Shown piece by piece: positions 1,804-58,200 of a stretch of DNA of 64,000 nt. This stretch comes from Paraphysomonas bandaiensis (Eukaryota > Protista > Chrysophyceae): the NCBI GenBank assembly GCA_965644295.1, contig CBFFRP010000124.1:28962-92961 (forward strand), given 5' to 3'. The stretch's first letter is position 1. Every line of letters starts with the position of its first letter. The notes under the pieces are model-generated. The model searched no databases, was not told the DNA's origin, and saw only the letters and a list, made by a program, of their open reading frames with translations. The position numbers were made by a program, and so were the translations under genes.

Positions 1804-4592
1804 CTAACCAGATATATTCTGTGAATGCGTTGCCTGCCACACGGACTTCCTATTAGTCTGAATTCTAATGACACAGTTCGTTTGATCGATGACAGTATCT
1901 CTTGCTAGTAGTTTTTTCTTCGAATTCCTATCAATTCCTCTGCCTTCAGCTCTTACAAAATCTCCATGCATTGTACAATGTGACAAAGCCCCTCGTTTCA
2001 ATGCATCGAACACATCTTCCACAGTACTACCTTGCTTAAGTTGCAGACAGTCGCGAAGTTGACAAGCGGGGATTTTAGCGCTGCTAGTCCATGCCACAGG
2101 TAGTTCGGTATCCAAATCACTCACAGGAAAGCACAATACTGGTGGCTTCAAGCTAACTGCAGTAGAAATCGCCTCCATGACCCCACTACCTCCCCATGTA
2201 CTCATGCAAGTACGAAGACGTTCTTCTTCTTCAACCCATTTCTTCGAATTTACAGGCGGAAGATTTCTACCAGAAATTTTTTCAAGAGCCCAGCATTCAG
2301 ACTGAGCGGACACGGGCACCGCTGCCTCGCCCCTCTCTGCGGATAGTTTCTGGCAAGCCTCCACAACGCATCTTCCTTTTTCAGGCGACAGAGAATCAAC
2401 CTTATTCAATGCCAGGCATATTGGGAACCGAATGCATATATAATGCGCGACCAGCCTGTGAATATCTCTATCTGGCCAATTAATGGCATGGTCTAAGCTG
2501 AGTCCCGCGCGCTGGGCTGCCAACTCAACCGTCCATAATGGCCCTTTATAACCTGAAAACAAAGCTAATACTCGCTTGCTACATTTGCTGTCCCCTCGAC
2601 GGCCCACAGACTCCCACTTGGCCTTGATATTGTTATATATCCATCGATGTAATTCGAAGCGAATCCACTCCGCATCAGCTAGTGGAGAGGAAGTATGAAA
2701 GGACAACATTGAAGTATCTAGAGTAGCTGTATCCACGTCTGAAGTCGAGTAATCGCCATCTTGTTCAATAATATTACCATCTTTGTCAGAGCGACCCGTA
2801 ATGTCCAACACATGTACCAGTACATCTGCATCACATAAATCAGACAGGAATCTATTACCCTTGCCCCTTCCTTTATACGCCCCAGGTACTAAACCGGCCA
2901 CGTCTTTAACCACTATGGGAAGAAGTCGGCGTCCTGCCATCCGTCCCTCTGTGCATCTTCCATGAAAAGGTTCTCGGTGACCAGGCAAAATATCTCCTAT
3001 GTTGTCGTCACCATCTTCCATGTGAGATGCATACCAGCCCGGACCAATATTGGGTTCAATTGTTGTGAAAGGATGTGCCGCAACCTCAGCCATATGCCGA
3101 TGACCACGTGAATCAAGGGATGCCCGGATAACTGCATTATAGAAAGTACTCTTACCAGCTGAGGGTTTACCTACCAACCACAAATACATCGTCTTATTAG
3201 AATGTACGTACTACGCTTACAGAGAGTACCTATCAATCCAACGGTGTAATTCCACAACCCGCGGGCAGAGGCAGATGCATTCAGACCTTCTGATTCCATC
3301 CACTTCTCTGTATAATTACTGGCATTAACACGATTTTGAGCAGCTATTCTCCCAGCTTCAGAAGATGCATTTCGAATCCATTCGTCCTCCTGTTCATCAC
3401 TTACTTCACCCTGTACGCTGCACTCCGGCATATTACCCACATCAGGAGAACTCTCTTCAGTTGATGGAGTAGATAGGGCAGATGTATGCTGCCACATACC
3501 TTCACTAAGCCATTCGTTACCGGCTTGAACACATTGCAAAACACATGTTTCTCCATTACTACAAATCTCAGCAGCAACCCGCACAATGGAAGAATGCAAC
3601 GAGCGCCTCATGGCTACTGTAAATTCCAACATAGAGAGGCTGCCTGTGTATATTTCGATATGCGGTGGGTGGTTAGGTTCAATAGGATAATTTTCTGCAA
3701 GAGTTATACTAACGCCTAGATTACCAGCCCAACCCTTTGGAGGAGGTGCAGAAGAATATCCAGGAGATAACAATACCCTACATGAAGCAGTGGGGTCACC
3801 TTTACTTGCAGGGGAAGTGTGGACCTCAAACTCTTCAGGTGAATATATACTACCAAGGACATCCATTTCCTCCGCTTGTAGATTCGCACATTCGTCAGAA
3901 ACTACACCTTTTCGTTTTACATCAGGTACTTCAGATAGGGGTGGAGTTACATGTGTGGTAACAGGTGTGTCAGAGGCCATGCTAGAAATTTCATGCTGCA
4001 TTTTTTCTAGGAAGGCGACGTATGAATTTAACATCACGGCACGTGTTGGTATGCAGTGCCCTTGTTCATGTTCAATTACTTCAGGACTGACAAACCTAGA
4101 AGCAAGTAGCGCAGAATTAGCTACTGGAATAACATTATCCTTTTGGCCCATCAGATGTAAACTCCGCACATTAGTTGGTACTTTACTGTTTCCAGAAGCA
4201 TCAAGCAAATACGCAGGCGCATCTGGAGCACCACCAATAATAACAAACTTGATTCCGGGAAATCGCTCGGGCATCGTGCAGAGCATAGCCGTCATTGTTC
4301 CGCCCATAGAAAACCCAAATATGCCCTCAAAAGGCCCCTCAGAGCGCCAAACGCCCTCTAAGTACTGTAACGATTGCTGCAGTGATTCCTCAACAATCTG
4401 ATTTCCATCACGATAAAACCAAGTCCGCAAAGGCACTTCGTCGCCTGTCTTTAATTCGAGAAGATGAGGTGCATCCACTATAGTGAATTTAGCAACAGCT
4501 CGAGCCTTATGGGGCAACCGGCCAAGTCGAGTGCGCAGTACTTCTGCCGATTGTTGTTTCCCATGCAGTGCCAGTATCTTCAGAGTCGACAT
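1804..4592 (-). CDS. Fusion protein (~909 aa): FSH1-type serine hydrolase + RWD domain + Obg-family (YGR210C-like) GTPase; one intron at 3171-3229
   Basis: ORFs 3171-4592 and 1804-3189 join in frame across a 59-nt GT..AG intron, giving WNYTVGLI-GKPSAGKST. Hydrolase motifs LALHG, GFSMG, D and HEQGH; RWD-like EEMDVLGSIY...YP...PP; GTPase motifs G1 GKPSAGKST, G2 PFTTIEPN, G3 DVAGLV, G4 NKVD. Confidence 0.88.
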
Positions 4593-5180: not shown

Positions 5181-6250
5181 ATGTTTTCTCTTCGGGTTTT
5201 TGTGGCCGGCGTGTGTATGCTGTGCGGCGCCTTGGCTCAAACCTCAACTGTGTGTCCTGATTATGACAGTTCCAAAATTAAGTTGGTCACGTTCGACTGC
5301 TTCGCCGCTCTTATGCAGTGGGAGAGTAAGTATTCGCTCTTATGTCTCGGTAACAGTGTAACAGCATCAATACTGCAGACTCGATGTATGAATCTGTTGC
5401 AGAGGTGATGATGCCGCAATTAACACAGGATCAAGTCTATACTTTAGTTCAGAAGTGGGAATCTGCCTACGGTAGCTACATGCAAAATGGTGGAACTGTC
5501 TTCGAAGAGGGTGTTACAGGGGCATTTCCATTTAGTTGGATGGCTGCCACCTCACTGAAAGGTATTCCTCTTCTTACACTGTTGTTATTGTTTGAAAATA
5601 TGGTTGTATAGACATTGGCAAAAGCATGGACATCACATTCACTCGCGATGAGTTTCACGAGCTGATGCTGTGTTGGGGGCGCCTACTTCCTTGGAATAAT
5701 ACTCAGGAGACCCTGGAGACACTTGTTGCAAACAACTTCACTATTGCGATACTCTCCAACGGAGATACGCAAACACTGTCCAATGCAGCAACTGTTTTTA
5801 AACCTCCTGTAGAATTTTCGTACATATTCAGTTCGGATTTTCCTGTCGGTGCTTTCAAACCACAGAGTGCCATCTACTATCAGGTATTATCTTGACAATG
5901 TGGCGCGTCAGTACTCCCCGTTTCGACTGCACTTTTCTTGAATTGATATTTGTTCACCGTACAGTAACTAATCTATGTTGATATTTGAAGGTATTGGATC
6001 GTACTCAATTTAAGGTTGAGGAAGTTCTCCATGTCGCTGGTGGCGCCTCAGATGGAGGGGGTGCTAGGGATGCAGGTGAGGAATTGTCGTTTGAAATCTT
6101 ACCATTTTCTCGAGGTAAGAGTGTAATATAGGTCTTTTTTCGGCTGTACTACACTCTACTTCGTTTGCTGAGCCACAGACTCTTCAAAGCACTCAACCTT
6201 GCTTCGACCTACCTGACATAACGTACGTCCCAGGAATTCTTGGTCTATAA
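5181..6250 (+). CDS. HAD-superfamily hydrolase (2-haloacid dehalogenase type II-like) with N-terminal signal peptide; multi-exon
   Basis: Motif I KLVTFDCF..LMQWE, motif II ILSNGD, GAFKP...IY, motif IV VLHVAG..SD..GARDAG, spread over GT-AG exons. Stop TAA at 6248-6250. Confidence 0.8.
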
Positions 6251-6625
6251 GAATCGTTGGAGAAATATATATTCTGGTGGTATCTAGAATGTGTTATTGA
6301 TGCCAGTAGTTTTGAACGTAGTGGCATTTGAATGCAGCCAACTACGTTGCTGCATTATTACAGGTACTTACAAACGTAGTACCAGCGAGTTTTATAGTAA
6401 GAACCGTAATAAAGTATAAAGTGTGGAAAGTCGTGGTAGTGCTTCGTGGTTCATATGAGTATCGTTGTATGGGGATTGTAGTGCGTGTATATAGTTATAT
6501 AAATACTCCCAAACACATCATAGCCACAATCACATGTAGGAAACAATATCTACGTACACCTGTTAGTAGATACAGAATACAAATTATCTCACATTTCTAT
6601 AAACACTCCCCTTCACCATGTACAC

Positions 6626-6766: not shown

Positions 6767-7180
6767 ACCCTCAACAAAGTCGGGCTCGCACCTTTTCGTG
6801 GTGTTTTGGGAGATAAGTACCGGAGATATCTCTCCGGGAAACTAACGTGAGCCGCATATATAGCCAGCAGATAATGTTCTGCCCACTCATAGCCTAATGC
6901 TTGTGTGGTACAAGGGACACTATTAGTGTCACTTGTGTAGACGTCTTTGGGCCTTGACGAATAAACAGGTATCCGAGAATGGGCCCACCTCAAGGGCATT
7001 CGGGGTATTGAGCTGTCTACTGAAGTCAAGCATCCGGGCTGTTAACCTTAAGGGCAGAGAGCGAAAGTACTTTCACCTCGGTGCTTGCGGCGACTCACAA
7101 GCAGCCTCCGTAGCGCTAAATAGTAAGACATCAGAGTTAAGCACTAGATAGTCAAATTGGTATTAACCAGACACTCACTA
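6767..7180 (+). mobile_element. SINE-like element B, copy 1
   Basis: Homologous to 20182-20557 and 42255-42751. Carries the shared 3' module (..GGTGCTTGCGGCGAC..). Near-perfect TSD CACACTTCAT/CATACTTCAT. Confidence 0.8.
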
Positions 7181-7637
7181 CATACTTCATTAAGTATTCT
7201 TTCTAAATCTAAATGGAACACACCAATCGATTTATGATAGCTTACAAACTACTGTGTTAAAAGTTGTGTCTATTTTAACCTAACATAATAAATGCTGCAG
7301 ATACTGTAGTGTACTCTTATCACTGAAGGTATTGTTATGATATGAAAACTGCTACAGTGTGCTAATCAACAGCTATACATATTATTTAAGAAGTTGGAAT
7401 GATAATGATACGTAAACTGGCTTGGTATATGATAGTAGCGTGTCCGCAACACTGCTACGAAATCTAGGAGGACACAGGCTAGTGTAACAATTAATTTGTT
7501 TAAATATGATAATTACAATCATTATTGGTAAATATTGCCAAGTAACTGGCTGTCATAATAATTTAGCTACTGATCATAGGAGTACAAACTCATTATCTGT
7601 TAGTTGTTAACATGTAGAAAAGATTGGATGTAAGTGC

Positions 7638-7738
7638 CAGGGCTAGGGAACAATATATTGCAATACTATTGCGAGCTACTTTAACAGAAACTATATTGAT
7701 GGAATATTTTGCCGATCAATATATTGTTCCCTGGTATG
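7638..7738. mobile_element. Degenerate MITE of hAT family 1
   Basis: AGGGAACAATATATTG ... CAATATATTGTTCCCT inverted termini. Interior matches 1470-1585. Confidence 0.6.
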
Positions 7739-7834
7739 TGCTATGTGCACAGTTACTTTATCAGTATTAATTATTAATCATAAGTTTACACTTTAACTTC
7801 AGCACAAGGGTAGTAACATGTAAAATATCGTTGG

Positions 7835-9546
7835 ATAATTCTCTGCCCTACGATGGCAAATACAGTCCAACATAAAGTTTCACCCTATTAACCAGCTCCA
7901 AGCCCAATGTCTCTATTGAGACCGTGGCTGAGTCACATCAGTGTGCCCAGGGCCTTTTACACTCCCTTACTGCTGCATTTTGTTGACCACCGCGCTTCCG
8001 ACAAATTACCTGTCACACCATGTTGTACACGCTCCAAGCCCCCCTGCCTGGCCTTGCAACCTTCACCCTACTCAACTACTTCAGTTAAACCACGTGCCTG
8101 CACCAATGCAGCGCTGACCGCACCTATGTGCTATCCCCTCAGCAGACAACTTCGTCTCACCCATCGCTTTCTACGGCTACAACCTCTCAGAACATGGCTC
8201 GTGCGAGCAGGCTCACGAAAACGACCCCCATGGACCCCCTATGCAATCACTGAATACTCTCGATCCCTCTCAACTGTGCAACAGGGCTGCCTTCTGCCGC
8301 CCACTCAACCCAACCCAACATGGTTTGTCTGTGGTCCATCCACCCAGCAGGCTACCCCCTCACCCTGTTCACCTATCACCCCCACAGCCCATCCATCTCA
8401 TTGGATAGACACTGTATTCCGCATACGGTATACTCGACTACTGTACTACTGTGTCCTACAGGATGTATACCATTCCGTGTATACCTCTACTGCTGTTGGA
8501 CACATCACCATGTCCATGTACCTGTCTACCTGTACTGCTGGACACATCACCATGTCCATGTACCTGTCTACCTGTACTGTTGGACACATCACCAGCTCTC
8601 TCTCTCTGTCCAACACACTCATAACACCACTGCAGTGTCATACACACACACAGTACACTCTACCTCCTCCTAGAAAACCCCCAGACAAACTATCTCCTCT
8701 CCCTTCGTCTCTGACACCTTGCCGTCATATTCCTTACACACACTCTCTATGCCTCAGTCTGTACCCCCCTGCACCAACACAGACACTAACAAGGGCAGCT
8801 GAGGACGTCCGAGTGTCTCCTCCAGACCATCATCATCATCACGATCATCTCGTGCATAGGTCTATCAGAGTACTCGACCTCAGTGACTCTTGTTCTGTTG
8901 CGCAGTCTCACTCTCCTCAATCAGATGTTGCCTCTCTTGCACCATCACACTCCCTCTCGACTCCCTGTAGCTGGACACACCGGATGACCCTCACATCCCA
9001 CCCCTGTACAGCTATACACCCTCTTGCATGTGTTCTCTACCGCTGGCTAAGACAGCAAAAGAGCCGATTTCGACGCTTCTTCACAGTAGGCCATAACCTT
9101 TTGCAAGACCTTCATCCACATACCTCCGAGCCACTTGGAACAATGCCTAAAGGAAGGCCACCAGATCGCCAATCTCAGAAGGGCATATTACTGTTTCCCC
9201 TAACTGCCATAAGGCTAATAAGTCAGTCCCCGTGAGGTACATAAGGCTATCTATCATATAGCGAGTGGAGTCTCATCCCAAGAGGAGACCTCCAGATCAC
9301 ACGCGCCGGTGAGTCCCAGGACATACGATCATGGCGAGCCTCATAACACACACTAAGAACGGAAGTGGTTGCACCTTGGTGCTTGCGGCGACGCACAAGC
9401 AGCTTCTGTAGCGTTAAATAGTAGGATAAAAGAGTTTGTATTGATTAGTTACGGGTAGTAGTCTAACTAGTATGACTAGCATTCTTCTAGCCACTAATTG
9501 GTGCAGGCTTTCAACGCCTATTGCTAAATAATCAGACATTCAATAT
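7835..9546 (+). mobile_element. 1.7-kb non-autonomous non-LTR element A, copy 1
   Basis: Near-identical to 23263-24973 with the same 5' start. 12-bp TSD AAATATCGTTGG at 7823-7834 and 9547-9558. Shared 3' module; no RT motifs. Confidence 0.9.
7907..9235 (+). CDS. 442-aa Pro/Ser/Thr/His-rich ORF carried by element A; function unknown
   Basis: Intact and the same length in both copies. The divergent block between copies keeps frame and has about ten synonymous third-position changes. Confidence 0.5.
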   Translation: MSLLRPWLSHISVPRAFYTPLLLHFVDHRASDKLPVTPCCTRSKPPCLALQPSPYSTTSVKPRACTNAALTAPMCYPLSRQLRLTHRFLRLQPLRTWLVRAGSRKRPPWTPYAITEYSRSLSTVQQGCLLPPTQPNPTWFVCGPSTQQATPSPCSPITPTAHPSHWIDTVFRIRYTRLLYYCVLQDVYHSVYTSTAVGHITMSMYLSTCTAGHITMSMYLSTCTVGHITSSLSLSNTLITPLQCHTHTQYTLPPPRKPPDKLSPLPSSLTPCRHIPYTHSLCLSLYPPAPTQTLTRAAEDVRVSPPDHHHHHDHLVHRSIRVLDLSDSCSVAQSHSPQSDVASLAPSHSLSTPCSWTHRMTLTSHPCTAIHPLACVLYRWLRQQKSRFRRFFTVGHNLLQDLHPHTSEPLGTMPKGRPPDRQSQKGILLFPLTAIRLISQSP

Positions 9547-9761
9547 AAATATCGTTGGCAAACAGCAAACTGACCACCTCTACACTCTACAACGATCGCC
9601 GTAATCTTTATTCTGTATAGACATAATATTTTAATAATTCCTTTCTTGTAATTTGCTGCTAGTAAGTACGTAATACTACTCAGTATTAGCGTACATTATA
9701 TCTTATGGAACCACCAATACTATAAGCTTGATATTCATCGTCCCAAAATGATTTTTATTGC

Positions 9762-10807
9762 TTACGTAACTTTACGAAAAACAAAAAAGCGTTCAAATCC
9801 TTTATCTCCGAATGCCTTTAACTTACACGTGTATGTAAGGGTCCACTTTCCACTTTCTAACAAGTCAAACAAAGTATCATTGGCATTAGCACCTCCCCTT
9901 CCTTCACCTACATATATAAACACATCGTTCTCCGGCGATGCAGACACATAGGCTTCCAAACATTTGGTCGCCATATCTCCTGGGTCTGGGAAAACAATCA
10001 TCAGGGCACGACCGTCAATTCCTCTAGATCTAGCAGGTACAGTGCCTACACGCTTGAATACTCTTTCATCTCCTTTTTGGACATCTTTGTAGAAGTACTG
10101 AGTGGCTGCCGGATTATGCGAAGCATTTGGTAGGGGAAGGCTCGTCATCGAGTCAAACGCTCTTATATCTACTTTATGCTTGTCTACCAACTGCCTAGCC
10201 CATTGTCCATTTCCTAGAAAAAATATTACTGAAATTCAATACATATTTGGACAAGATAATAGTGGTGTAGATGTATACCTGCCCCTAATTCAACAATTCC
10301 TTCTTTAGAACGTGCTATATCTGCTATGACTGTAAGTACCTCGTCAGTGTATGTTGCACATCCATATTTTTCTAAGTGCGCTTGCCGATCCTGTACAGTC
10401 AAACCTTTCCCATAGACAATATCAGCAACGCTCGTCACAATTTCATTGCGCTCTGACTCAGACATATCCTTCGTGTGTAAATCTTTTCGGTGCTTTACCA
10501 GCATCGATTGCAGCAATGTCTCATCTTCTTTGCGTTTGGCCAGGCCTTTTTTCAGAGACGGCCACAACATCATACCTTCATTCGAGGGTGAATTGGATTC
10601 ATTTTTAAGATACTTTTGGAAATGCAATGAGTCCTCGTTGATAAAGAAACTTTGAATCCACGTTAAGTAGGAAGTATTGGGTTGCACTTGTTTAGCGGGC
10701 ACAGAGCAAGGTGCATCTGCAGTGCAAGTGGACCACTGCTCCAACACACCCGAATATAATCCATAGCTTGCAGGGATAGATGACACTAAAAAACGTCTGG
10801 CAGACAT
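9762..10807 (-). CDS. Class I SAM-dependent methyltransferase-like protein; intron at 10214-10278
   Basis: Spliced motif I GIVELGAG-NGQWA, followed by IRAFD, LMIVFPDPG and FIYVGEGRGGANA. Start assumed at MSARRF. Confidence 0.7.
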
Positions 10808-45943: not shown

Positions 45944-48900
45944 TTAAAAACTGTTGGCGTCTTCATATGCCTTCTGCACGTCGTCCTTGTTGAGGACCCA
46001 CCCGCACTTGCCATTGCGACACACCACTTGCCGCAGACCACAGGTCGTGGCTATGTTGTATCCCTCTCTTTTCTCCAGTAACTCCCTAATGGTTTCATAC
46101 GCCAGTCTGCTGCCCTCGGTGGAGGCATCGATCTGCTTCAGCATCTCAGTAGGGTCCTCTGCATCCACCACACTATCCAGTTTCTCTTCCGTAATCTCCT
46201 CTATTTTATCTGGCATGTTGACCAGAGAGAGCGCCTTATCCACATAGCGCTTGTGGACATCCAGGTCAGTGCCCAAAGCCTCAATCACACCTGGTAGAGG
46301 GATGCCCCCCACTGATGACAGGGCGAGCTTCAGGAGCACTAGACCGAGCTTCAGCACAGGACCGGCTTACTCCCGATAGACTTTAATAGGGTAGCCTTTA
46401 CAGCACAGAGTTCAGACACATGTGTAATATGTAACATGTCACACAGACAAACACGTATGTAATAACGTATATATGTATATATATATAACCAGCACCAACA
46501 AGCATGCACATGTATATATTATAATCCTCATCACCTTGTCCATTTGGCCCACAAGGGGCGATGCGGCGGGTGTGGCTGCAGAGGAAGAAGAGGGTGTACT
46601 TCCGAGTGAAAACTCGAGTTGCCCCTCTGAGCAGATATCCCGTCATCGATTGATCTTTGATTTCAGGAAGGACAATCATGAGGGTGGGGATGGTGTGAGT
46701 GCCTCTCAACAACTGTGCGAGGCTATTGTGTAGAGAGTCCATTTGTGCAGAGAGTGCATCCAGGGCACCTACTAACGACGGGTTGCCCTGCATATCTCTC
46801 ATCGCATCGGTCAATTGGATAATGCTTTGTTGAGTCGCCTCCGCCCGAGCTGCATCCTCAGCTTGCATTCTCGAGCGCTTATCTTCAAATTGCTCAATTT
46901 TCTGCTGAAATTGATTGTTGTTCGCAATCACCGACTGAATGGACTCCACCCACTGCTCATGTAGGGAAGACAGTCGCTCTATCACATCATGTCGCAAGAA
47001 CTTATTCTCCCTTTGAACGTGATGAAGTGTCTCTTGGTCTTTGCGATGGGCTCGAGTGAATCCTAGCTCCGCAATCTTGTCCACCACCTCAGCAGCCGTG
47101 GGTCTCTCGGCAGGGTTGAAACTGCACATTGCAAATACCATGTCGACGTAGCCCCTGTTGATGCCTTTCATCTTGGCTGCGAGTAAACCTCTCAGGTATG
47201 TTTCATCGGATGAAAGTGCTCTAGTTAAGAGCGCCTCCTCTTGCCATGGGAGCACATCCTGCCGTCGTGGGTCGGTTTTATTCAGCAGTGCCGCCACCAG
47301 CAGCCCGGCAGTAAATATATCAATGGCAGGGTCGGCTACGAGCAAACCTGGACTGCCGTTATAAACATCGGGACTCACCCATGGCTGAGAGAATATCAGC
47401 TTAGGGGGGGTGCTGTCATCGCAGCGACACAGCTCTGGCCCATCAAGGTCATTCACACAGCGAAACCTTCTAGAACAATCCAAATCACAGAATTTCAATT
47501 GGTTGCCTCCGATCAACACATTAGCTGGTTTGAGGTCCAGGTGGCATAAACCACATGCATGCAATTCCTTTAAGGCCAAAACCAACTGATTCACCCAGTC
47601 GTACTTTGCCCAGGCGTAGTCTTGGTCTATTACGACGCGTAAATCAAACTCGAGGCGCTCCATTACAATATACTGGCAATGTCCCTCTCCACAACCCCCG
47701 TACACATGCACACACCCTGTGGCTGTTCCTGCTTTCAACAGCAGGGCAAAGTTTTGCAACTCCCGCTGCAAGTCTCGTTGTCGTCCATTGGTCTTGATGA
47801 TGACTTCATGTTTCTCGAATTGACCGTATAAGTTTTTATGGACGAAGTTACCAGAGAACATGCCATCCAGAAGGTTACCAATACACACTCCTCTCCTTGC
47901 TGATGTCGCAGTCAATGGCTGTATATTCTCAATAATTTCACCCGACGACACACGATAAAGGGAGGTAGGAGAGGATACCGGAGAGGGCGGAGACAGGGGG
48001 GGAGGGCAAAGCTCTTTCAAGCCCGTCATGAGTCGGACACGGACAGCCAAGTTCGTTATGCCCATCACTTTAAGCTCGCTACCACTATTCTCCATCAAAT
48101 ATTTAGCACTATCCCCAATGATGGCCATGCTATCAAAGTGTGCTTCTGTCAATTTGTCGAACACCGACTTGGCGTCAATGCTTGTGCCTACAAGTGATCA
48201 CAGCAGTATTATATGTTACTTCTTGTATACATAATATAACTGCACATATATATACACCTGCCTATAATCGTACATATAATATATGTGTGCAAAAATACTA
48301 TGAGTAACGACATCAGAATAAGGGAGTTGATGCTGTAGTCATACCGGCAAATATTTTCCGCAGCCATATGAACACCTCGTTCGAATGCAGCTTCTGTGGC
48401 ACATATAGAAGCTTGAGCACATATATAAGTGGGTGCTACTCACCTTAACAGCTGTGCCAACTATACACATACATATATGGTCGCAGTCAAGGGCACACAA
48501 ACATATCATACCATAGAACCACATCACCATCACACACATACCTCTGCAGCAGCTTCCTTCTCCTCTTGCTGTCTCCGTCTCTGTCTCTCAGCCTATACAA
48601 TACACACAATCTCAATTAAAACCAAAACACTCTCGACACCTATATCATACACCAACCATACCAATATATCAAACATATCATACCATATAGCTACTTCACC
48701 ATCACATACATACCTCTGCAGCAGCAGCTTCCTCCTCTTGCTTTCTCTGCTTCTCGGCCTACACAATACACACAACCTCAATTAAAACCAAACACTCTCG
48801 ACACCTACATCATTCACCAACCATACCAATATATCAAACATATCATACCATAGAACCACATCACCATCACATACATACCTCTGCAGCAGCAGCTTCCTCC

Positions 48901-51827
48901 TCTTGTTGTCTCCGTCTCTGTCTCTCAGCCTATACAATACACACAACCTCAATAAACACCAAACACTCTCGACACCTACATCATACACCAACCATACCAA
49001 TACTATCAAACATACCATACCATAGAACCACATCACCATCACACACATACCTCTGCAGCAGCTTCCTTCTCCTCTTGCTGTCTCCGTCTCTGTCTCTCAG
49101 CCTATACAATACACACAACCTCAATTAAAACCAAAACACTCTCGACACCTACATCATTCACCAACCATACCAATATATCAAACATCAAACCATATAACTA
49201 CTTCACCATCACATACATACCTCTGCAGCAGCAGCTTCCTCCTCTTGCTTTCTCTGCCTCTCGGCCTACACGATACACACAACCTCAATTAAAACCAAAA
49301 CACTCTCGACACCTACATCATTCACCAACCATACCAATATATCAAACATCAAACCATATAACTACTTCACCATCACATACATACCTCTGCAGCAGCAGCT
49401 TCCTCCTCTTGCTTTCTCTGCTTCTCGGCCTATACAATACACACAACCTCAATTAAAACCAAAACACTCTCGACACCTACATCATACACCAACCATACCA
49501 ATATATCAAACATATCATACCATACCATATAACTACTTCACCATCACATACATACCTCTGCAGCAGCAGCTTCCTCCTCTTGCTTTCTCTGCCTCTCGGC
49601 CTACACGATACACACAACCTCAATTAAAACCAAAACACTCTCGACACCTACATCATTCACCAACCATACCAATATATCAAACATCAAACCATATAACTAC
49701 TTCACCATCACATACATACCTCTGCAGCAGCAGCTTCCTCCTCTTGCTTTCTCTGCTTCTCGGCCTATACAATACACACAACCTCAATTAAAACCAAAAC
49801 ACTCTCGACACCTACATCATACACCAACCATACCAATATATCAAACATATCATACCATACCATATAACTACTTCACCATCACATACATACCTCTGCAGCA
49901 GCTTCCTCCTCTTGCTGTCTCTGCCTCTCGGCCTACACAATACACACAATCTCAATTAAAACCAAAACACTCTCGACACCTACATCATACACCAACCATA
50001 CCAATATATCAAACATATCATACCATATAACCACTTCACCATCACACATACCTCTGCAGCAGCAGCTTCCTCCTCTTGCTGTCTCCGTCTCTGTCTCTCA
50101 GCCTACACAATGCACATATGGTCCAATGAGGTCATCTCTCTGGGTCTACGAACAAGATGAAACAAGCATACAGCACGCATACTAACATGTGCACTTCTGA
50201 TGACATTACGCGTCTCATCATCTTCTGCTGAGTCCACAGGAGTCTTTCCAACCTGCAAAACAATAAGCATCATAAAGAAGCGGCACTGTGCATCGTCGCA
50301 TATTCATATCTAGATACCGTCTTCACACAATGAGTCAGTGAAGTACATATAGCCCTCTTAGCACTGTATATGTATGTATATCACTGTATATGTATGTATA
50401 TCACTGTATATGTATGTACATCACTGTATACGTATGCATATCACTGTGTATGTATGTATAGGGGGGTTACTTACACTGTTTCTTATAGTGATATCTGCTC
50501 CTTCCCTTATGAGATATTCACATGTATCTCTGTGACCATTACGAGCAGCATAGTGAAGAGCTGTAGAACCCCCCTATAAAACAACAACAATAAAATCACA
50601 TGAGCCCTCTTAGCACTGTATATGTATGTACATCACTGTGTATGCATGTATATCACTGTATATGTATGTATATCACTGTGTATGTATGTATAGGGGGGTT
50701 ACTTACTCTGTCTCCTATAGTGATATCTGCTCCTTTGCTTATGAGATATTCACATGTATCTCTGTGACCTTTAGAGGCAGCCAAGTGAAGAGCTGTCCAA
50801 CCCCCCTATAAAACAACAACAATGACATCACATGAGCCCTCTTAGCACTGTATATGTATGTATATCACTGTATATGTATGTATATCACTGTATATGTATG
50901 TATATCACTGTATATGTATGTATATCACTGTATATGTATGTATATCACTGTATATGTATGTATATCACTGTATATGTATGTATATCACTGTATATGTATA
51001 TATGTATGTATATCACTGTATATGTATGTATAGGGGGTTACTTACATTGTCTCCTATAGTGATATCTGCTCCTTTGCTTATGAGATATTCACATGTATCT
51101 CTGTGACCTCCAGAGGCAGCCAAGAGAAGAGCTGTAGAACCCCTCTATAAAACAATAACAATAACATCACATGAGCCCTCTTAGCACTGTATATGTATGT
51201 ATATCACTGTATATGCATGTATATATGTATATCACTGTATATGCATGTATATCACTGTATATGTATGTATAGGGGGGTTACTTACATTGGTTCTTATAGT
51301 GATATCTGCTCCTTTGCTTATGAGATATTCACATGTATCTCTGTGACCATTATAGGCAGCCCAGTGAAGAGCTGTAGAACCATACTATAAAACAACAACA
51401 ATAACATCACATGAGCCCTCTTAGCACTGTATATGCATGTATATCACTGTATATGTATGTATAGGGGGGTTACTTACATTGGTTCTTATAGTGATATCTG
51501 CTCCTTTGCTTATGAGATATTCACATGTATCTCTGTGACCATTACGAGCAGCCCAGTGAAGAGCCGAATAACCATCCTATAAAACAACAACAATAACATC
51601 ACATGAGCCCTCTTAGCACTGTATATGCATGTATATCACTGTATACGTATGTATATCACTGTATATGTATGTATATCACTGTGTATGTATGTATATCACT
51701 GTGTATGTATGTATGTATGTATGTATGTATGTACCTTATCTTGTGTATGTATATTGATACCCTTCTCAACGCATCTCTTCACACCACTCCAATCACCCTC
51801 AGAAGCAGCTGTAGTAATATCATCCAT
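45944..51827 (-). CDS. Ankyrin-repeat / helical spacer / SAM-like / non-RD protein kinase / coiled-coil receptor-like gene built from exon cassettes; in-frame TAA at 46367-46369
   Basis: ATG 51827; N-cap exon 51735-51827; ANK exons 51478-51576, 51286-51384, 51046-51144, 50707-50805, 50475-50573; C-cap 50187-50252; ten micro-exons 48542-50102; SAM-like EVFIWL...ELKVMGITNLAVRVRL; kinase VIIK, HLDLKPAN, DLD, DIFTAG, ERPTA. All cassette exons are phase 0 with AG/GT ends. Confidence 0.85.
48495..50110. repeat. Tandem array of ten ~160-175-bp exon+intron units
   Basis: Recurring CCTCTGCAGCAGC...CTCAATTAAAACCAAAACACTCTCGACACC. Each unit holds one 42-51-nt minus-strand micro-exon. Confidence 0.95.
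50350..51734. repeat. Tandem ankyrin exon+intron units with a 20-bp intronic minisatellite (TATATCACTGTATATGTATG)n
   Basis: Five 99-nt exons. Introns of 93-240 nt differ mainly in minisatellite copy number. Confidence 0.95.
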
Positions 51828-52859
51828 CTTATATATATGTATATAGAAGACAAGAGAAGTGAAGTGAATAGAAGCAACAATATGATCCTACTATACACAC
51901 ATACACGCCACATCACACCATCTCACATCACACCATCAGCACAATAAGATACCTTCATATCTTGAAGAGACACTCTATTTTTCAGTTGGTGATCAAACAC
52001 ACTCTCAGCTTTGTTTCATTATCATTCTCGTGGCCGTCACTCTGATCTCTCATCAGTTCAGTGTTGCGTTAAGTTGCATGTGAGTGTCTTCATCTTTTCA
52101 ACCATCTGTCGCTGTCGTTCATCAGGATGCGCTTGTGATCATGGTTTGTCTGAGTGAGTCTGCTCACAGTGATGCTGATGGAGGGATGATGCTGGTAGAC
52201 TAATTCAGAGGTGCTGAGCACGAATCTATCGTCATATTATTGTATTTCATTGAGTATCAACAGCCATAGACAGCATGATGACATCGTATCACTCAACTCA
52301 CATGCATGCATTAGCTGCAGTATGAACCCAACCTGACGACACATGCATGTGTGTTACGTACTGACAACACTCTGATTGGTTATACGTGTGTATTGTTCAA
52401 CTGTAGTCTACGATATCAGTGTCTATGAGTGATGTCTATGAGTGAGATCAAACCACAAGTGGTACACTTCACAATCAGAATGAGATGAGAGAAAATCTGA
52501 TGACACATAATGGAGGCACAACCTCAGCGATCTCGTTCCTCTATTTTCAATATTTCAAGAGCGTTGCGTAGGCTCACTTCGAAGAACTAATCAGTGTCAA
52601 AGAGAACGATCTTCGATTACGAATCAGTGAGCCGTATGTGCTAAGTATCCTACCAGCAATCTAACACGCTTGAAGAAGTTTGGGTTATCTTAGTGTTGTG
52701 AGTTTTGAGATGAGTGTGAATAGATGTGTTTCTGGGCGGGGATATTTATCATGATTTATTTCTTTTTGCTTAGCAATAGTGGAACATGGTGGTGCTGAGC
52801 AAGTTGGCTATCAATTTGAGAGTGATATGTGATACCAGGTGTATGCAATGCGTATTATA

Positions 52860-53220
52860 AGGGGATGGTAAGAATAATATTTCAATACTATTGTTAGGTA
52901 GTGTTCCATTGATAATATTAATGGAGTTTTTGGAACCGCCCTAACAATAGCATTGCAATACAGTAGTATCATTAATCAGTAAGTAAACACACCCGTAGAT
53001 TTTATTTTTAGTATCAGTCATTGAGATCACAAGATAGCCAAAACCACTACGCTGACCAGTGACCAGCAAAGAGTAGCTACTGCTTAGCTAATCACTATTT
53101 TGTTCAAAATCACCCACTGAGCCATCATCGGCCACCATACTCATTCAAAATTGATTGAAATATGCATGTATCCGATCACTACTGTCAGAAACAACAGCAT
53201 ATGTGTTGGAGTACGCTATG
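52860..53220. mobile_element. Truncated, diverged copy of hAT family 1
   Basis: Colinear similarity to 424-770 (CAATACTATTGTTAG, TAGTAT.AGTCATT.AGATCAC, CTGAGCCATCATCGG, ATTGAAATATGC). Confidence 0.7.
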
Positions 53221-53223
53221 AAG

Positions 53224-53936
53224 CAGGGCCTGGTAACCATTAATGGCCCATTAATGCATGGTAGTCCAGTTCCCGGCAATTATAATGGTATTAATGAAAA
53301 AAGTCCCGGCAATTATAATATCTAACTTAAAGTAGATAACACCACTCATATAATAGATAGTTTTGTGCTCCCTTAATTACTAATATTTAGTCAAATAGCA
53401 GACTACAAATTTTAACTACTTCTCACTCTCTACTGGCACATCAGGATCTTCTTTCAGGGCTTCATGGAGGGTATAAACATCCCACAACATGTAATTGGCT
53501 CGTAGGAATAGCAACGATTCTAGACGATATGGATTCATGTTTCTACGCTCAGGTGTCATAATCAACTTTGCACGACTAAAGAGCCCCTCAACAACATTAG
53601 ATTGTGCTTCAATATGAAGCAAGAAGCGGTAGTTGGACTCATAGGTACCAAGTCGAGCTCTCTTGGTGACCTCAGCGCTGTCTAGAACACGCTGTGAAAA
53701 ATCAGTTCCTTCACTCTCGTCCTCGTTATTTCTGTCGGGTACGCCAACCTCCATGGACGAATGCAGTTGCAAATGTCTATTTTTTTTCTATGAAGTATGT
53801 CACTATGATATGTAGTGATAATATAGGATGACTTCCACAAAGTGCGTCATAAAATTAAAAAAATGGATGGATATACATAAAATACTCGAACTGTGACTTC
53901 CACAACTGTCATATAGTTATTAGTGACCAGGGCCTG
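53224..53936 (-). mobile_element. Internally deleted hAT element (family 2) retaining the transposase C-terminus
   Basis: TIR CAGGGCCTGGTAACCATTAAT (identical to the MITE at 6626) and imperfect partner CAGGCCCTGGTCACTAATAA. ORF 53416-53772 QSNVVEGLFSRAK..MTPERRNM.PYRLESLLFLRAN..LW. Confidence 0.8.
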
Positions 53937-54138
53937 ATATATATATTGAAAGTCTTTTTATTTAGCAATAGGCGTTAAAAAACTGTACCAATATAGTGGC
54001 TAGTTGAACGCTAGACGTACTAGTTAGACCTCTACCCATAACTAATCAGCACAAATTCCATTATCCTACTATTTAACGCTACAGAAGCTGCTTGTGCGTC
54101 GCCGCAAGCACCAAGGTGCGACCACTTCCGTTCTTGAT
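53937..54138 (-). mobile_element. Shared non-LTR 3' module with (AT)n tail; body different or unrecognised
   Basis: Reverse complement of the conserved ~190-bp end; no TSD found. Confidence 0.75.
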
Positions 54139-55272
54139 GTTGATTGCGAGTTGTGACCACGTGGCATCTCGCGTGCCCTACTTACGTGGCTATAGTGCGT
54201 TACTACAAGTGATACTTCAAGACTATAATGTTGTGCTTGGAAGCGCAGAGCGCGACTAACTATTAATAACGCATTCATCAGCAGACAACAAATAATCACT
54301 CATATTATTATTATTCATAGCAAAACACAGAAGTAAAGAACTCGTTCCACGATGACTAAAGCCTCAAGCTTCTCTCATACCTGAACCAGTACTCGGACTG
54401 CAGCTCTTCAGCATTGAATAGGACTCCTAGCATGGCACCAGTATGTCAGAGACAGGCCATGCAGACCCTTACACCCGCATCGGAAGTATTGCACAGACCC
54501 TGCATACACTGGTCACGGGTAGAAAGTGCATCCAGAGACCATTACCTCCATTTGTGGGTATACGTGGGTGGACTGCCTCTAGTAGTAGGCTCCCAGGAGG
54601 GGGGAGTGTGCTCTGGACCCGGTTCACCATGCGCTTCATAGGAACTGAAGCCGGTAAACACCCTCCTGCTCCATCGCTAACAAGCTCCAACCAGCTTGCG
54701 CTTAATCTTCCCTTACGGACCATACTGGCCTGCACAGCCTCCTTACGCTCCTTGTTGGGGGGTTCGCTGCCTCATTGAGATGCTGCAACTTGCGCTTATC
54801 GAGGTCGTTAGGAGAGACTGCAATGTGAATTATGGTCTACTGGACTCATATGCGACCCTTCGAGAGTCTGTCGGGGGCTCCAGCTGCCTGTGCGAGCAAC
54901 ACTGAGTGATCTTGCCATACTAACATACACACTCGACTTCAGGTGAAAAAGTCATGAAAATAGATGATTTTATGTCTATTTTTTAGAATATACCACTTTT
55001 TCAATATTTGGGTATAAATACTGTGTTTTTTATATAAAAAGCCCCCATTCTGAGGTGTCAGTTGTTCATACTGTCTGTATACATACATGTATGTCCTGAA
55101 CATACTAGTAGATGGGTGTCTGGTTCCCACAATATGCTCGGATGGTTCTGCTCTGTGGAACTCCATTCACCCAACTGGACAATTTTTATCCAAAGAACAA
55201 TAGCGATGCTCGACCATACGACAGTCCCTCGTATGCATCACAAGATGCCCTCATGTGTGTGTATGTGTGTAT

Positions 55273-58200
55273 ATGAATCCACTCATTCTCTGTGTGTTTG
55301 TGTCTCTGATAACACTCACAGTTGCCTCAGTAGCCTCTCAAGAGGCAGCGCTGTGTGACTTCATTCAGGCGACTGATGTTACCTCCGTATGGTCTGAGTG
55401 GACCTGTGCGGGTGTGGGGAACAAGTGCAGCTTCACTGGAGTCACCTGCACAGGATCGAACATAGCCAGGGTGCACTTATCTGATGATGACATATCAGGA
55501 TCTCTCCCCTCATCACTGGGTCAGATGACTGCATTGACATATTTGAATATTGCTTACAACTCTCTCATCGGTACACTCCCCTCATCACTGGGTCTGATGA
55601 CTTCTCTTAGTTATCTCGATCTATATGACAATTCCTTAACGGGTCCTCTCCCCTCATCTATCAGCGATATGACTGCATTGACATATTTGGATATTGATTC
55701 CAACTCTCTCATCGGTACACTCCCCTCATCACTGGGTCAGATGACTTCTCTTAGTTATCTCTATCTAAATTCCAATTCCTTAACGGGTCCTCTCCCCGAC
55801 TCTTTTTCCAGTCTAACTAAATTACGAGTTCTAAGGGGTGATGGCAATATGTTCACAGGTGTCTACCCTTCCGAGCTATGCACAATGCCTCAATTAGCAA
55901 CATTCTACCTCACACAAACCAGTTACCATGAATGCTTGAGGCCCACATCAGCACCGACCCCTTTCCCTTCAGGACAGCCATCTCGTCAACCTAGTGGACA
56001 ACCATCTGGTCAACCTACAGGTGAGCCATCTGGTGAACCGACAGGACAGCCATCATGCCAACCCACAGGTGAGCCATCTGGTGAACCGACAGGACAGCCA
56101 TCTCGTCAACCTAGTGGACAACCATCTGGTCAACCTACAGGTGAGCCATCTGGTGAACCAACAGGACAGCCATCTGGCCAACCTAGTGGACAACCATCTG
56201 GGATCCCTACTGGACAGCCATCATGCCAACCCACAGGTGAGCCATCTGGTGAACCGACAGGACAGCCATCTCGTCAACCTAGTGGACAACCATCTGGGAT
56301 CCCTACTGGGCAGCCATCTGATGAACCTAGTGGACAACCATCATGTCAACCCACAGGTGAGCCATCTGTGATCCCTACTGGACAGCCATCTGGTGAACCT
56401 AGTGGACAGCCATCTGGGATCCCTACTGGACAGCCATCTAGTGAACCCACAGGACAACCATCTGGCCAACCTAGTGGACCGCCATCTGGGCAACCTACGG
56501 GGCAGCCATCATGCCAACCTAGTGGACAACCATCTGGCCTACCTAGTGAACCGCCATCTTGTGAACCCACAGGACAGCCATCTGGTGAACCTAGTCGACC
56601 GCCATCTAGGATCCCTACTGGACAGCCATCATGTCAACCCACAGGTGAGCCATCTGGTGAACCGACAGGACAGCCATCTGGGCAACCTAGTGGACAACCA
56701 TCTGGGATCCCTACTGGGCAGCCATCATGTCAACCCACAGGTGAGCCATCTGGTGAACCGACAGGACAGCCATCTCGTCAACCTAGTGGACAACCATCTG
56801 GTCAACCTAGTGGACAGCCATCTGGGCAACCTACGGGGCAGCCATCATGCCAACCTAGTGGACAACCATCTGGCCTACCTAGTGAACCGCCATCTTGTGA
56901 ACCCACAGGACAGCCATCTGGGATCCCTACTGGACAGCCATCATGTCAACCTAGTGAACCGCCATCTGGTGAACCGACAGGACAGCCATCTCGTCAACCT
57001 AGTGGACCGCCATCTGGGCAACCTACGGGGCAGCCATCATGCCAACCTAGTGGACAACCATCTGGCCTACCTAGTGAATCGCCATCTGGTGAACCCACAG
57101 GACAGCCATCTGGGATCCCTACTGGACAGCCATCTGGTCAACCCAGTGGACAGCCATCTAGTGAACCCACAGGTGAGCCATCTGGTCAACCCAGTGCACA
57201 GCCATCAATCGAACCGACAGGACAGCCATCATGTCAACCTAGTGGACAACCATCTGGCCTACCTAGTGAACCGCCATCTGGTCAACCTAGTGGACAACCA
57301 TCTGGGATCCCTACTGGACAGCCATCTAGTGAACCCACAGGTGAGCCATCTGGTCAACCTAGTGGACCGCCATCTGGGCAACCTACGGGGCAGCCATCAT
57401 GCCAACCTAGTGGACAACCATCTGGCCTACCTAGTGAACCGCCATCTTGTGAACCCACAGGACAGCCATCTGGGATCAACCTAGTGGACAGCCATCTGGC
57501 GATCAACCCACGGGACAGCCATCTCAGTGAACCCACAGGTGAGCCATCTGGTCAACCCAGTGGACCGCCATCTGGCTGCAACCGACAGGGCAGCCATCAT
57601 GCCAACTCTAGTGGACAACCATCTGGCCTACCTAGTGAACCGCCATCTGGTGAACCCACAGGACAGCCATAGCCATCTGTTACAACTCTAGTGGACAACC
57701 ATCTGGGATCCCTACTGGACAGCCATCTAGTGAATTCCAAGAAGAGCCATCTGAGGCTGACTCCCAGGGATCACATTCAAATTTATGGTAGTTATTCACA
57801 ACCTTAGTGGACAAACCATCCAGGCCTACCTAGTGAACCTGCCATCTGGTGAACCCAGCAGGACAGCCATCTGGGATCCCTACTGGACAGCCATCTGGTG
57901 AACCCAGCAGGACGAGCCATCTGGTCAACCTTGGTGGTCCACGGCCAGCTACACTAGTGAACTGCCACCTGGTGAACCTATGGGCAACGACCCAGACCCC
58001 TACTGGACAGCTAGCTGCCAACCCAGGGACAACCATCTGGCTTCAACCTAGCGGACAGCCGTCAAGTGTACCAACAGGGCAACCATCTAGTGAACCAGCA
58101 GGACTGCCATCAAGTGAATCAACAGAATGGTCCATTCAAATTTCTTCTCTGGATGACGCCATCAAGAACAACCTATAGTACAGCCATCCCTGGATTCCAA

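Follow-up and report, generated by a model that had tools for sequence, protein, structure and literature searches.

One-repeat-per-exon ankyrin cassettes with variable putative binding-face codons, joined to a predicted non-RD kinase, in the chrysophyte Paraphysomonas bandaiensis

Introduction

Near-identical ankyrin (ANK) repeats of 33 residues have been described in fungal NOD-like receptors (NLRs), where they show repeat-number polymorphism between alleles and concerted evolution, and where the positively selected, polymorphic sites lie on the concave face, in the inner helix and the beta-hairpin (Dyrka et al. 2014, PMC4986451); het-d and het-e of Podospora are fungal NLRs whose ANK repeats are highly internally conserved (HIC; PMC12222747). 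A second kind of system is known from Ectocarpus, whose genes of the LRR-ROCO and NB-ARC-TPR kinds encode one repeat per exon and undergo exon shuffling, gain and loss of genes, and selection that diversifies the repeats (Zambounis et al. 2012, PMC3341825); brown-algal ROCOs (2024, PMC11378527) are the counterpart of these LRR-ROCO candidate receptors. Here we analyze a stretch of 64,000 nucleotides from Paraphysomonas bandaiensis (assembly GCA_965644295.1, contig CBFFRP010000124.1, positions 28,962 to 92,961), hereafter called the window, and in it a gene in which five ankyrin exons of 99 nucleotides (nt), or cassettes, lie between exons for capping half-repeats and make up the N-terminal module of an ankyrin-spacer-kinase protein. 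We consider it probable that the array is a fast-diversifying recognition module carried on a kinase, shaped by concerted evolution of its scaffold together with selection for diversity of its binding face.

Like the fungal receptors, the window gene has near-identical 33-residue ankyrin repeats, variation in repeat number and diversity at positions predicted to lie on the concave face. In the fungal proteins the partner of the repeats is a NACHT or NB-ARC domain, and PMC4986451 describes no exon-per-repeat arrangement, whereas here each repeat has its own exon, the introns carry a minisatellite and the partner is a predicted non-RD kinase. With the Ectocarpus genes the window gene shares one repeat per exon, shuffling, diversifying selection and a stramenopile-type protist setting, but in Ectocarpus LRR or TPR repeats are combined with ROC-COR or NB-ARC; here ankyrin is combined with a kinase, nucleotide identity of the scaffold is far higher, and one array holds at least 45 cassettes. 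The array also resembles designed ankyrin repeat proteins (DARPins; general design in PMC8683736) in its N-cap, its identical and self-compatible internal repeats, its C-cap and the same six diversified positions. It differs from them in being natural, exon-encoded and kinase-fused, in having extra variable positions (8, 32, 24 and 28) and in forming far longer arrays, DARPins having 2-3 internal repeats.

More distant comparisons can be made. TAL effector repeats are tandem units of ~100 nt, almost nucleotide-identical, with variation limited to a few specificity codons; the likeness is in logic only, as TAL effectors have another fold and a DNA ligand, are bacterial and lack introns. RIPK4/ANKK1, ILK and TNNI3K combine ankyrin repeats with a kinase domain in a single cytosolic chain, but their repeats are fixed and diverged, without hypervariable cassettes, and no close sequence relation to them was detected, a homologue search with the kinase exon having returned only two weak bacterial kinase matches, which says nothing on relatives. 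Lamprey variable lymphocyte receptors (VLRs) are, like the window array, solenoid repeat receptors with cassettes between fixed caps; they are assembled somatically from flanking non-coding cassettes, whereas here all cassettes are exons within the gene. The principle is already established for other architectures, in fungi and brown algae; no description of hypervariable ankyrin arrays with one exon per repeat turned up in our search of the literature. The window gene unites the fungal device of conserved repeats with hypervariable sites and the brown-algal device of one-repeat-per-exon shuffling on an ankyrin scaffold, with a predicted non-RD kinase where those systems have an NLR or ROCO core, and does so in a marine protist that has been little sampled. 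Specific to the window are a complete, short and transcribed member of the family, a physical link to the kinase, and a locus that occurs with 5 or with at least 45 cassettes.

Results and discussion

Structure of the ankyrin exon array

The gene lies on the minus strand. Exon 1 (51827-51735, 93 nt) begins with the ATG at 51827 and encodes an N-terminal capping half-repeat of 31 amino acids, MDDITTAASEGDWSGVKRCVEKGINIHTQDK. The five cassette exons, each of 99 nt and in phase 0, are found at 51576-51478, 51384-51286, 51144-51046, 50805-50707 and 50573-50475, and are followed by a 66-nt exon (50252-50187) for a C-terminal capping half-repeat of 22 amino acids, VGKTPVDSAEDDETRNVIRSAH. Borders are GT..AG throughout; each cassette is preceded by TATAG (the upstream sequence ending in TTTTATAG) and followed by GTAAGT, and all exons of the gene begin and end in phase 0. 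The translations match exactly those of a first-pass annotation, made by a model from the letters alone, which had described an N-cap, five phase-0 exons of 99 nt and a C-cap. Its statement that codons 13-22 and 25-30 are nucleotide-identical in the five exons, codon 10 being the sole purely synonymous variable codon, was likewise exact on recount. Its picture of a cassette array between dedicated caps holds for the exons and fails for the C-cap as an end: this exon has no stop, a GT donor comes next, and the gene continues to ~45947.

Taken singly, each cassette exon is recognized as the Pfam Ank repeat (PF00023), scoring 43.8-43.9 bits where the cut-off is 21.1 (E 2e-11), and the cassettes align in register with solved DARPin and ankyrin chains, cassette 2 for instance with DARPin modules. 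The N-cap exon has a weak Ank_4 match (E 0.11). The head variant of cassette 3, RSLLSG, recurs in cassettes on two other contigs (C526 and C508).

The six introns among the N-cap, cassette and C-cap exons (50253-51734, a span that includes the five cassette exons) have a conserved 5′ end, GTAAGTAACCCCCC, and a conserved 3′ end with a branch-point-like CTAAG. A 20-nt minisatellite, CACTGTATATGTATGTATAT on the plus strand, is present in every cassette intron (50362-51733), and its copy number determines the length of the window's six introns, which ranges from 93 to 240 nt; in all arrays of the family, cassette periods fall on a 20-nt ladder from 170 to 352 nt. Since the introns share conserved ends and a minisatellite of variable copy number, exon plus intron is the unit of duplication.

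That the 99-nt units are spliced could be seen in contigs from public sequencing runs (X1, X4 and X9, from three studies, and the DNA-like X16), which were compared with the window over 46300-50840, a span that takes in cassettes 4 and 5. In X1 the units abut without an intron: a contig that goes back 88 letters in the window with 11 intervening letters, for example, makes up 99, and the joint string AGAACCATCATC reverse-complements to GAT|GAT GGT TCT, which encodes ...D | D G S. As these joints add up to 99 nt and decode as D|DGS, splicing joins the cassettes precisely where their borders had been predicted; in X1, such exon-exon joints were found at the borders of cassette 4, and cassette 5 takes part in the joint 50571>50709. 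The first-pass annotation had named RNA with unspliced units as what would speak against it, and spliced units are what the RNA contains.

Within the window, the variable amino-acid positions of the cassettes are 1, 3, 4, 7, 8, 11, 12, 23, 24 and 31-33. Pairwise differences among the five cassettes amount to 0.31 per nt at the 12 variable codons, about ten times the values for the remaining 21 codons (0.022) and for 43 nt of flanking intron (0.037), a contrast among site classes that is far from chance or even-handed divergence.

The cassette family and the pattern of variable sites

A search with one cassette and its intron flanks returned more than 110 copies of 87-96% identity in the 62.5-Mb genome, nearly all on the contigs C526, C508, C483 and C639. 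Cassettes were located by their GHRD core in these four contigs, in C640 and in the window, so that codons 13-16 are not counted below. This gave 128 units, 127 with the AG acceptor, 126 with the GTAAGT donor and none with a stop; the 125 intact cassettes comprise 75 distinct nucleotide sequences and 73 distinct proteins. A profile made from 23 cassettes scored 150 genomic matches, each with E 3e-15 or better, of 518 first-look candidates. Paralogous copies of the N-cap exon number 13 in the genome, and those of the C-cap exon 25. Run against 1.84 billion representative sequences, the same profile found generic long ankyrin arrays, some of them highly internally conserved, and no close cassette relative. 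For fungal NLRs, HIC repeats are defined as at least ~85% identical along a stretch of 100 amino acids or more; mean column identity over the 23 cassettes is 85%, which places the family within this definition, and the window copy alone is borderline, with its five repeats 73-88% identical to the first. As a side observation, a cassette-like ankyrin match on C633 (3547-3642, minus strand) lies within an uninterrupted frame of 607 amino acids and may represent an intron-poor or retrocopied relative.

Over the 125 cassettes, amino-acid entropy is highest at codons 8, 33, 12, 32, 3, 11, 1, 24, 31 and 28, in this order, and most third positions of the scaffold codons are invariant. In the alignment to solved DARPins, exon position 2 is a conserved Gly, and exon positions 3, 11 and 12 fall on positions that differ among modules. 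The positions randomized in DARPins (2, 3, 5, 13, 14 and 33), which we take to be exon positions 33, 1, 3, 11, 12 and 31, are reportedly those of the original library design by Binz et al. in 2003. All six belong to the window's variable set (hypergeometric P 8e-4) and all are within the top 9 of 33 positions by entropy in the family (P 7.6e-5). From this alignment and from textbook knowledge of the fold, the variable positions are predicted to lie on the concave binding face.

Substitution rates were estimated by the Nei-Gojobori method over distinct cassettes. The ratio dN/dS is 5.2 at the six DARPin positions, which alone were fixed a priori; it is 6.6 (dN 0.59, dS 0.09) at the eight most variable face codons, a set picked after the data had been seen, and 0.6 (dN 0.026, dS 0.045) at the other 25 codons, while intron flanks differ across cassettes by 0.03-0.15. 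When the first allele of each codon is set aside, non-synonymous and synonymous alleles stand at 31:1 for the face and at 14:6 for the rest (Fisher P 0.01). The excess of non-synonymous change at binding-face positions that characterizes HIC repeats is thus found here too. Entropy ranks, dN/dS and DARPin register agree with the first-pass claim that variation is centered on binding-face positions, and the entropies over the family show that variation is not evenly spread.

It could be argued that this is an ordinary ankyrin-kinase gene with neutral, recent tandem exon duplications, in which unconstrained surface residues drift and long arrays are unstable in the manner of satellites. Tandem exon-intron units with a minisatellite are prone to slippage, higher-order repeats in the arrays (see below) show recent block duplication, and ankyrin surface positions are variable in all families, all of which would fit. 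Relaxed constraint, however, gives a dN no higher than the neutral rate, whereas dN at the face far exceeds both scaffold dS and the divergence of the introns; face codons differ at two or three nucleotides next to identical silent sites; and with no stop among the 128 candidates and 125 of them intact with both splice sites kept, the cassettes do not look unconstrained. A contrast this large rules out relaxed constraint alone, and we regard the neutral explanation as a whole as unlikely.

Shuffling and mosaicism of the cassettes

The variable codons draw on small alphabets of 2-8 alleles each. Heads (codons 1, 3, 7, 8, 11 and 12) occur in 35 types and tails (codons 23, 24, 28 and 31-33) in 32, and these are joined in 70 combinations; for 48 of the 55 codon pairs, all four combinations of the two commonest alleles are present. 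The recurrence of short variant patches in different combinations, claimed in the first-pass annotation for the window, therefore extends to the family. Higher-order repeats of 2-9 cassettes are found within arrays. Symmetric phase 0, the 70 head-tail combinations and the four-gamete evidence together are what is expected of an exon-per-repeat shuffled receptor. In the window, all five cassettes have the silent variant ATA at codon 22, which is rare elsewhere, and the heads of four of the five are unique in the set; sharing this silent marker and yet having mostly unique heads, the window cassettes are close kin with diverged or patched faces.

Fusion to a kinase

The first-pass annotation had read the array as a self-contained binder ending at its C-cap. 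This did not survive comparison with RNA contigs, which join the C-cap exon to a series of mini-exons and then to a kinase. Ten tandem mini-exons (48542-50102, minus strand) of 42-51 nt, all in phase 0 and with an exon-plus-intron unit of ~164 nt, encode a charged helical spacer of 157 amino acids with the pattern AE[KR]QR..EEEAAAAE. They are followed on the same strand by a short linker exon of 49 nt (48393-48345), which is needed for an open frame and has RNA joints on both sides, by a large exon of 1,653 nt (48187-46535) containing a pre-kinase region, a protein kinase domain (Pfam Pkinase, PF00069, E 3e-17) and a coiled-coil-like stretch, and by the last exon (45947-46395). Four GT..AG joints connect these parts: 50101>50186, from the C-cap exon to the first mini-exon (in X1, with a variant in X4); 48393>48542, from the last mini-exon to the linker; 48186>48344, from the linker to the large exon (X1, X4 and X9); and 46394>46534, from the large to the last exon (X1 and X4). 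None of the four was found in the DNA-like run X16. The order in the protein is thus N-cap, five ankyrin repeats, C-cap half-repeat, charged helical spacer, kinase, coiled coil and C-terminal domain, and the ankyrin array is its N-terminal module.

The large exon contains the motifs HLD, DLD, CHLDLKPAN and VIIK. With HLD as a non-RD signature, the kinase is predicted to be of the non-RD class; the catalytic Asp, Lys and Asn are present. When the large exon and the C-terminal piece were compared with Pfam, the result was Pkinase only and neither NACHT nor NB-ARC, so that the gene does not classify as an NLR. No obvious signal peptide was recognized in the N-terminal sequence, as judged by eye only. 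Copies of the kinase half are confined to the window, C483 and C640 (98% identity), apart from a broken one on C365; since it is present in so few copies, other family members must carry other partners or none. The C365 copy (54435-55585) is a degraded kinase exon of 64-74% identity with several stops, beside another N-cap/C-cap ankyrin gene, and looks pseudogenized.

As assembled, the gene model encodes 951 amino acids and ends at an in-frame TAA (46369-46367, minus strand) in the last exon. The TAA arises from a 9-nt gap at 46360-46375 relative to four runs and both paralogs: in each of the four runs, 9 additional letters are present at 46368 with full depth, and both paralogs read GAG TGG CTA ATA AAA GCC where the window has GAG TAA GCC. 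Beyond the TAA the frame is open for 140 more codons, and with the 9 nt restored the last exon stays open to 45947. A spliced X1 contig combines the A at 46385 that is specific to the window (G in C483 and C640) with the 9 nt, and so does an X4 contig nearly identical to the window (1 mismatch in 1,238 nt) contain them. Since window-type spliced RNA contigs contain the 9 nt, the stop is probably not real but an assembly error, or else private to the sequenced strain, and the full protein probably has ~1,090 amino acids with a Cys-containing C-terminal domain. The stop and the broken kinase copy on C365 might suggest that the window copy is a decaying pseudogene, or that a long array was collapsed in assembly. 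Against the former, X1 and X4 contain spliced contigs that match the window copy and keep the 9 nt; against the latter, the window cassettes are set apart by private heads and by a silent marker of their own, and the gene has 10 mini-exons where other versions of the locus have 5 or 1. We therefore hold decay or collapse to be very unlikely.

The C-terminal domain, of ~150-200 amino acids with conserved Cys and His (LFFLCSH...APCG...CGLRQVVCRNGKCGW), is found at 45947-46366 (minus strand) in the window and at 5997-6452 (plus strand) on C483 (L035). It belongs to no Pfam family (weak zf-tcix match, E 0.024), scores below 0.8 in the ESM Atlas gave no lead, and no RBR-type ligase is evident in it.

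One locus with different array lengths

Two contigs, C526 (22076-25523) and C639 (375-3831), match the window at 51624-55079, collinearly and with 95.9% identity. On two others, C483 and C640, the gene halves downstream of the arrays are 98.7% identical to the window, and more blocks of C483 stay collinear past the gene. The window version has 5 cassettes and 10 mini-exons; C526 has the N-cap followed by 45 cassettes; C639 has the N-cap and at least 2 cassettes up to the contig end; C483 has 7 cassettes, the C-cap and 1 mini-exon; and C640 has at least 7 cassettes, the C-cap and 5 mini-exons. C526 and C639 diverge from each other by 2.7%, C483 and C640 by 0.3%. There are thus at least three versions of the locus, which could alike be alleles, haplotigs or segmental duplicates. 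Cassette number, which the first-pass annotation had proposed to check, differs sharply between collinear versions within one assembly, and with 5 against at least 45 cassettes on collinear contigs (alleles or duplicates) the repeat-number polymorphism of HIC repeats is found here. The contrast of 5 versus many is firmer than that of 45 in one gene, in which we have lower confidence. The mini-exon spacer varies as well, with 10 copies in the window, 5 on C640 and 1 on C483 (L035 ~3790-3850), all in phase 0.

On C526 (L031), arrays of opposite orientation meet at ~9700-9810, where the plus-strand minisatellite runs into a minus-strand cassette cut at codon 17. This inverted mid-cassette junction may be a real inversion breakpoint or a misassembly.

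Several of these features would be compatible with programmed or high-frequency somatic diversification, resembling that of VLRs or VSGs, in which arrays are reshuffled at mitosis via the minisatellite or by exon skipping. Cassettes and mini-exons are of phase 0-0, so that any subset stays in frame; the same 20-nt minisatellite is present in every intron; three locus versions occur within one assembly; and the inversion junction falls exactly where the minisatellite borders half of a cassette. In their unique flanks, however, the versions are 1-4% apart, which indicates diverged germline copies, not somatic derivatives. The candidate skipping joints in X1 read as paralog junctions: the joint 50250>50709 with TCAT between, for example, decodes as the regular link from last cassette to C-cap in a paralog that has D as the first residue of its C-cap, as is the case on C483. 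We thus regard somatic diversification as highly improbable, and it would be just as surprising if mitotic recombination seeded by the minisatellite, possibly with regulated exon skipping, produced clonal lineages with different arrays on one kinase. Were this true, a protist would make a receptor repertoire within the organism's lifetime and not only over evolutionary time.

The skip-like X1 joints bear paralog-specific junction letters and decode as ordinary junctions of paralogous copies, in contigs that, being assembled, are unable to show rare isoforms. The first-pass annotation had attributed diversification to exon shuffling, gene conversion or combinatorial splicing; mosaicism and the change in cassette number agree with the former two, and the suggestion of combinatorial splicing finds no support in these contigs.

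Proposed mechanism and possible role

In the reading that we prefer, germline diversification of a recognition module under selection, the five exons would supply a cytosolic multidomain protein with its ankyrin array, the part that binds ligands. Exon-plus-intron units would duplicate, and unequal crossing-over together with short-tract gene conversion would homogenize the scaffold codons and intron ends; the same processes would also alter the number and order of cassettes and reshuffle a limited set of variant patches. Selection would preserve, and probably favor, amino-acid diversity at the beta-hairpin and helix-1 positions of the concave face, and the diversified array would couple recognition to kinase signaling. 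We infer the recombination mechanism, including the minisatellite as its substrate, and the binding of ligands by the concave face from the patterns described above.

Non-RD kinases are said to be associated with innate immune receptors (a link attributed to Dardick and Ronald, 2006). Since this association, the ANK repeats of fungal NLRs and the exon-per-repeat genes of Ectocarpus offer three analogies, the protein may have a role in non-self or pathogen recognition; mating, self-recognition or another conflict would fit equally well. If it is a recognition system, directed for example at viruses or parasites of plankton or at self versus non-self, the gene would be a tractable entry into protist immunity. 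The family also amounts to a natural experiment, in which evolution randomizes the six DARPin positions and, beyond them, exon positions 8, 32 and 24; this could inform the design of binder libraries.

Several points weigh against this reading. The locus versions may be segmental duplicates instead of alleles or haplotigs, and the contigs with the long arrays are small and may be misassembled, so that the figure of 45 cassettes in one gene is tentative. The eight-codon face set is a post hoc choice, and dN/dS among recombining paralogous repeats is descriptive and not a formal site-model test. Placement of the variable positions on the concave face comes from alignment to DARPins and from textbook knowledge, a role in recognition of non-self or pathogens rests on analogy, and in the assembly a premature stop interrupts the window copy.

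Surroundings of the locus

AT-rich, unrelated sequences, possibly mobile elements, lie upstream of the truncated arrays on C483 (1-1850) and C526 (1-1585). Downstream of the gene on C483 (L035), an insertion of 2.9 kb relative to the window (6831-9742) is possibly a mobile element as well. A conserved neighbor encodes an Obg-type GTPase, whose best named matches, at ~40% identity or less, include stramenopiles and Plasmodiophora. The neighboring gene in the window (55255-57672, plus strand) encodes LRRs and a long PT-repeat region (PF04886, E 9e-117). Compared with the C526 version, this PT-repeat region aligns off the diagonal with 75-81% identity, and so also varies between versions of the locus.

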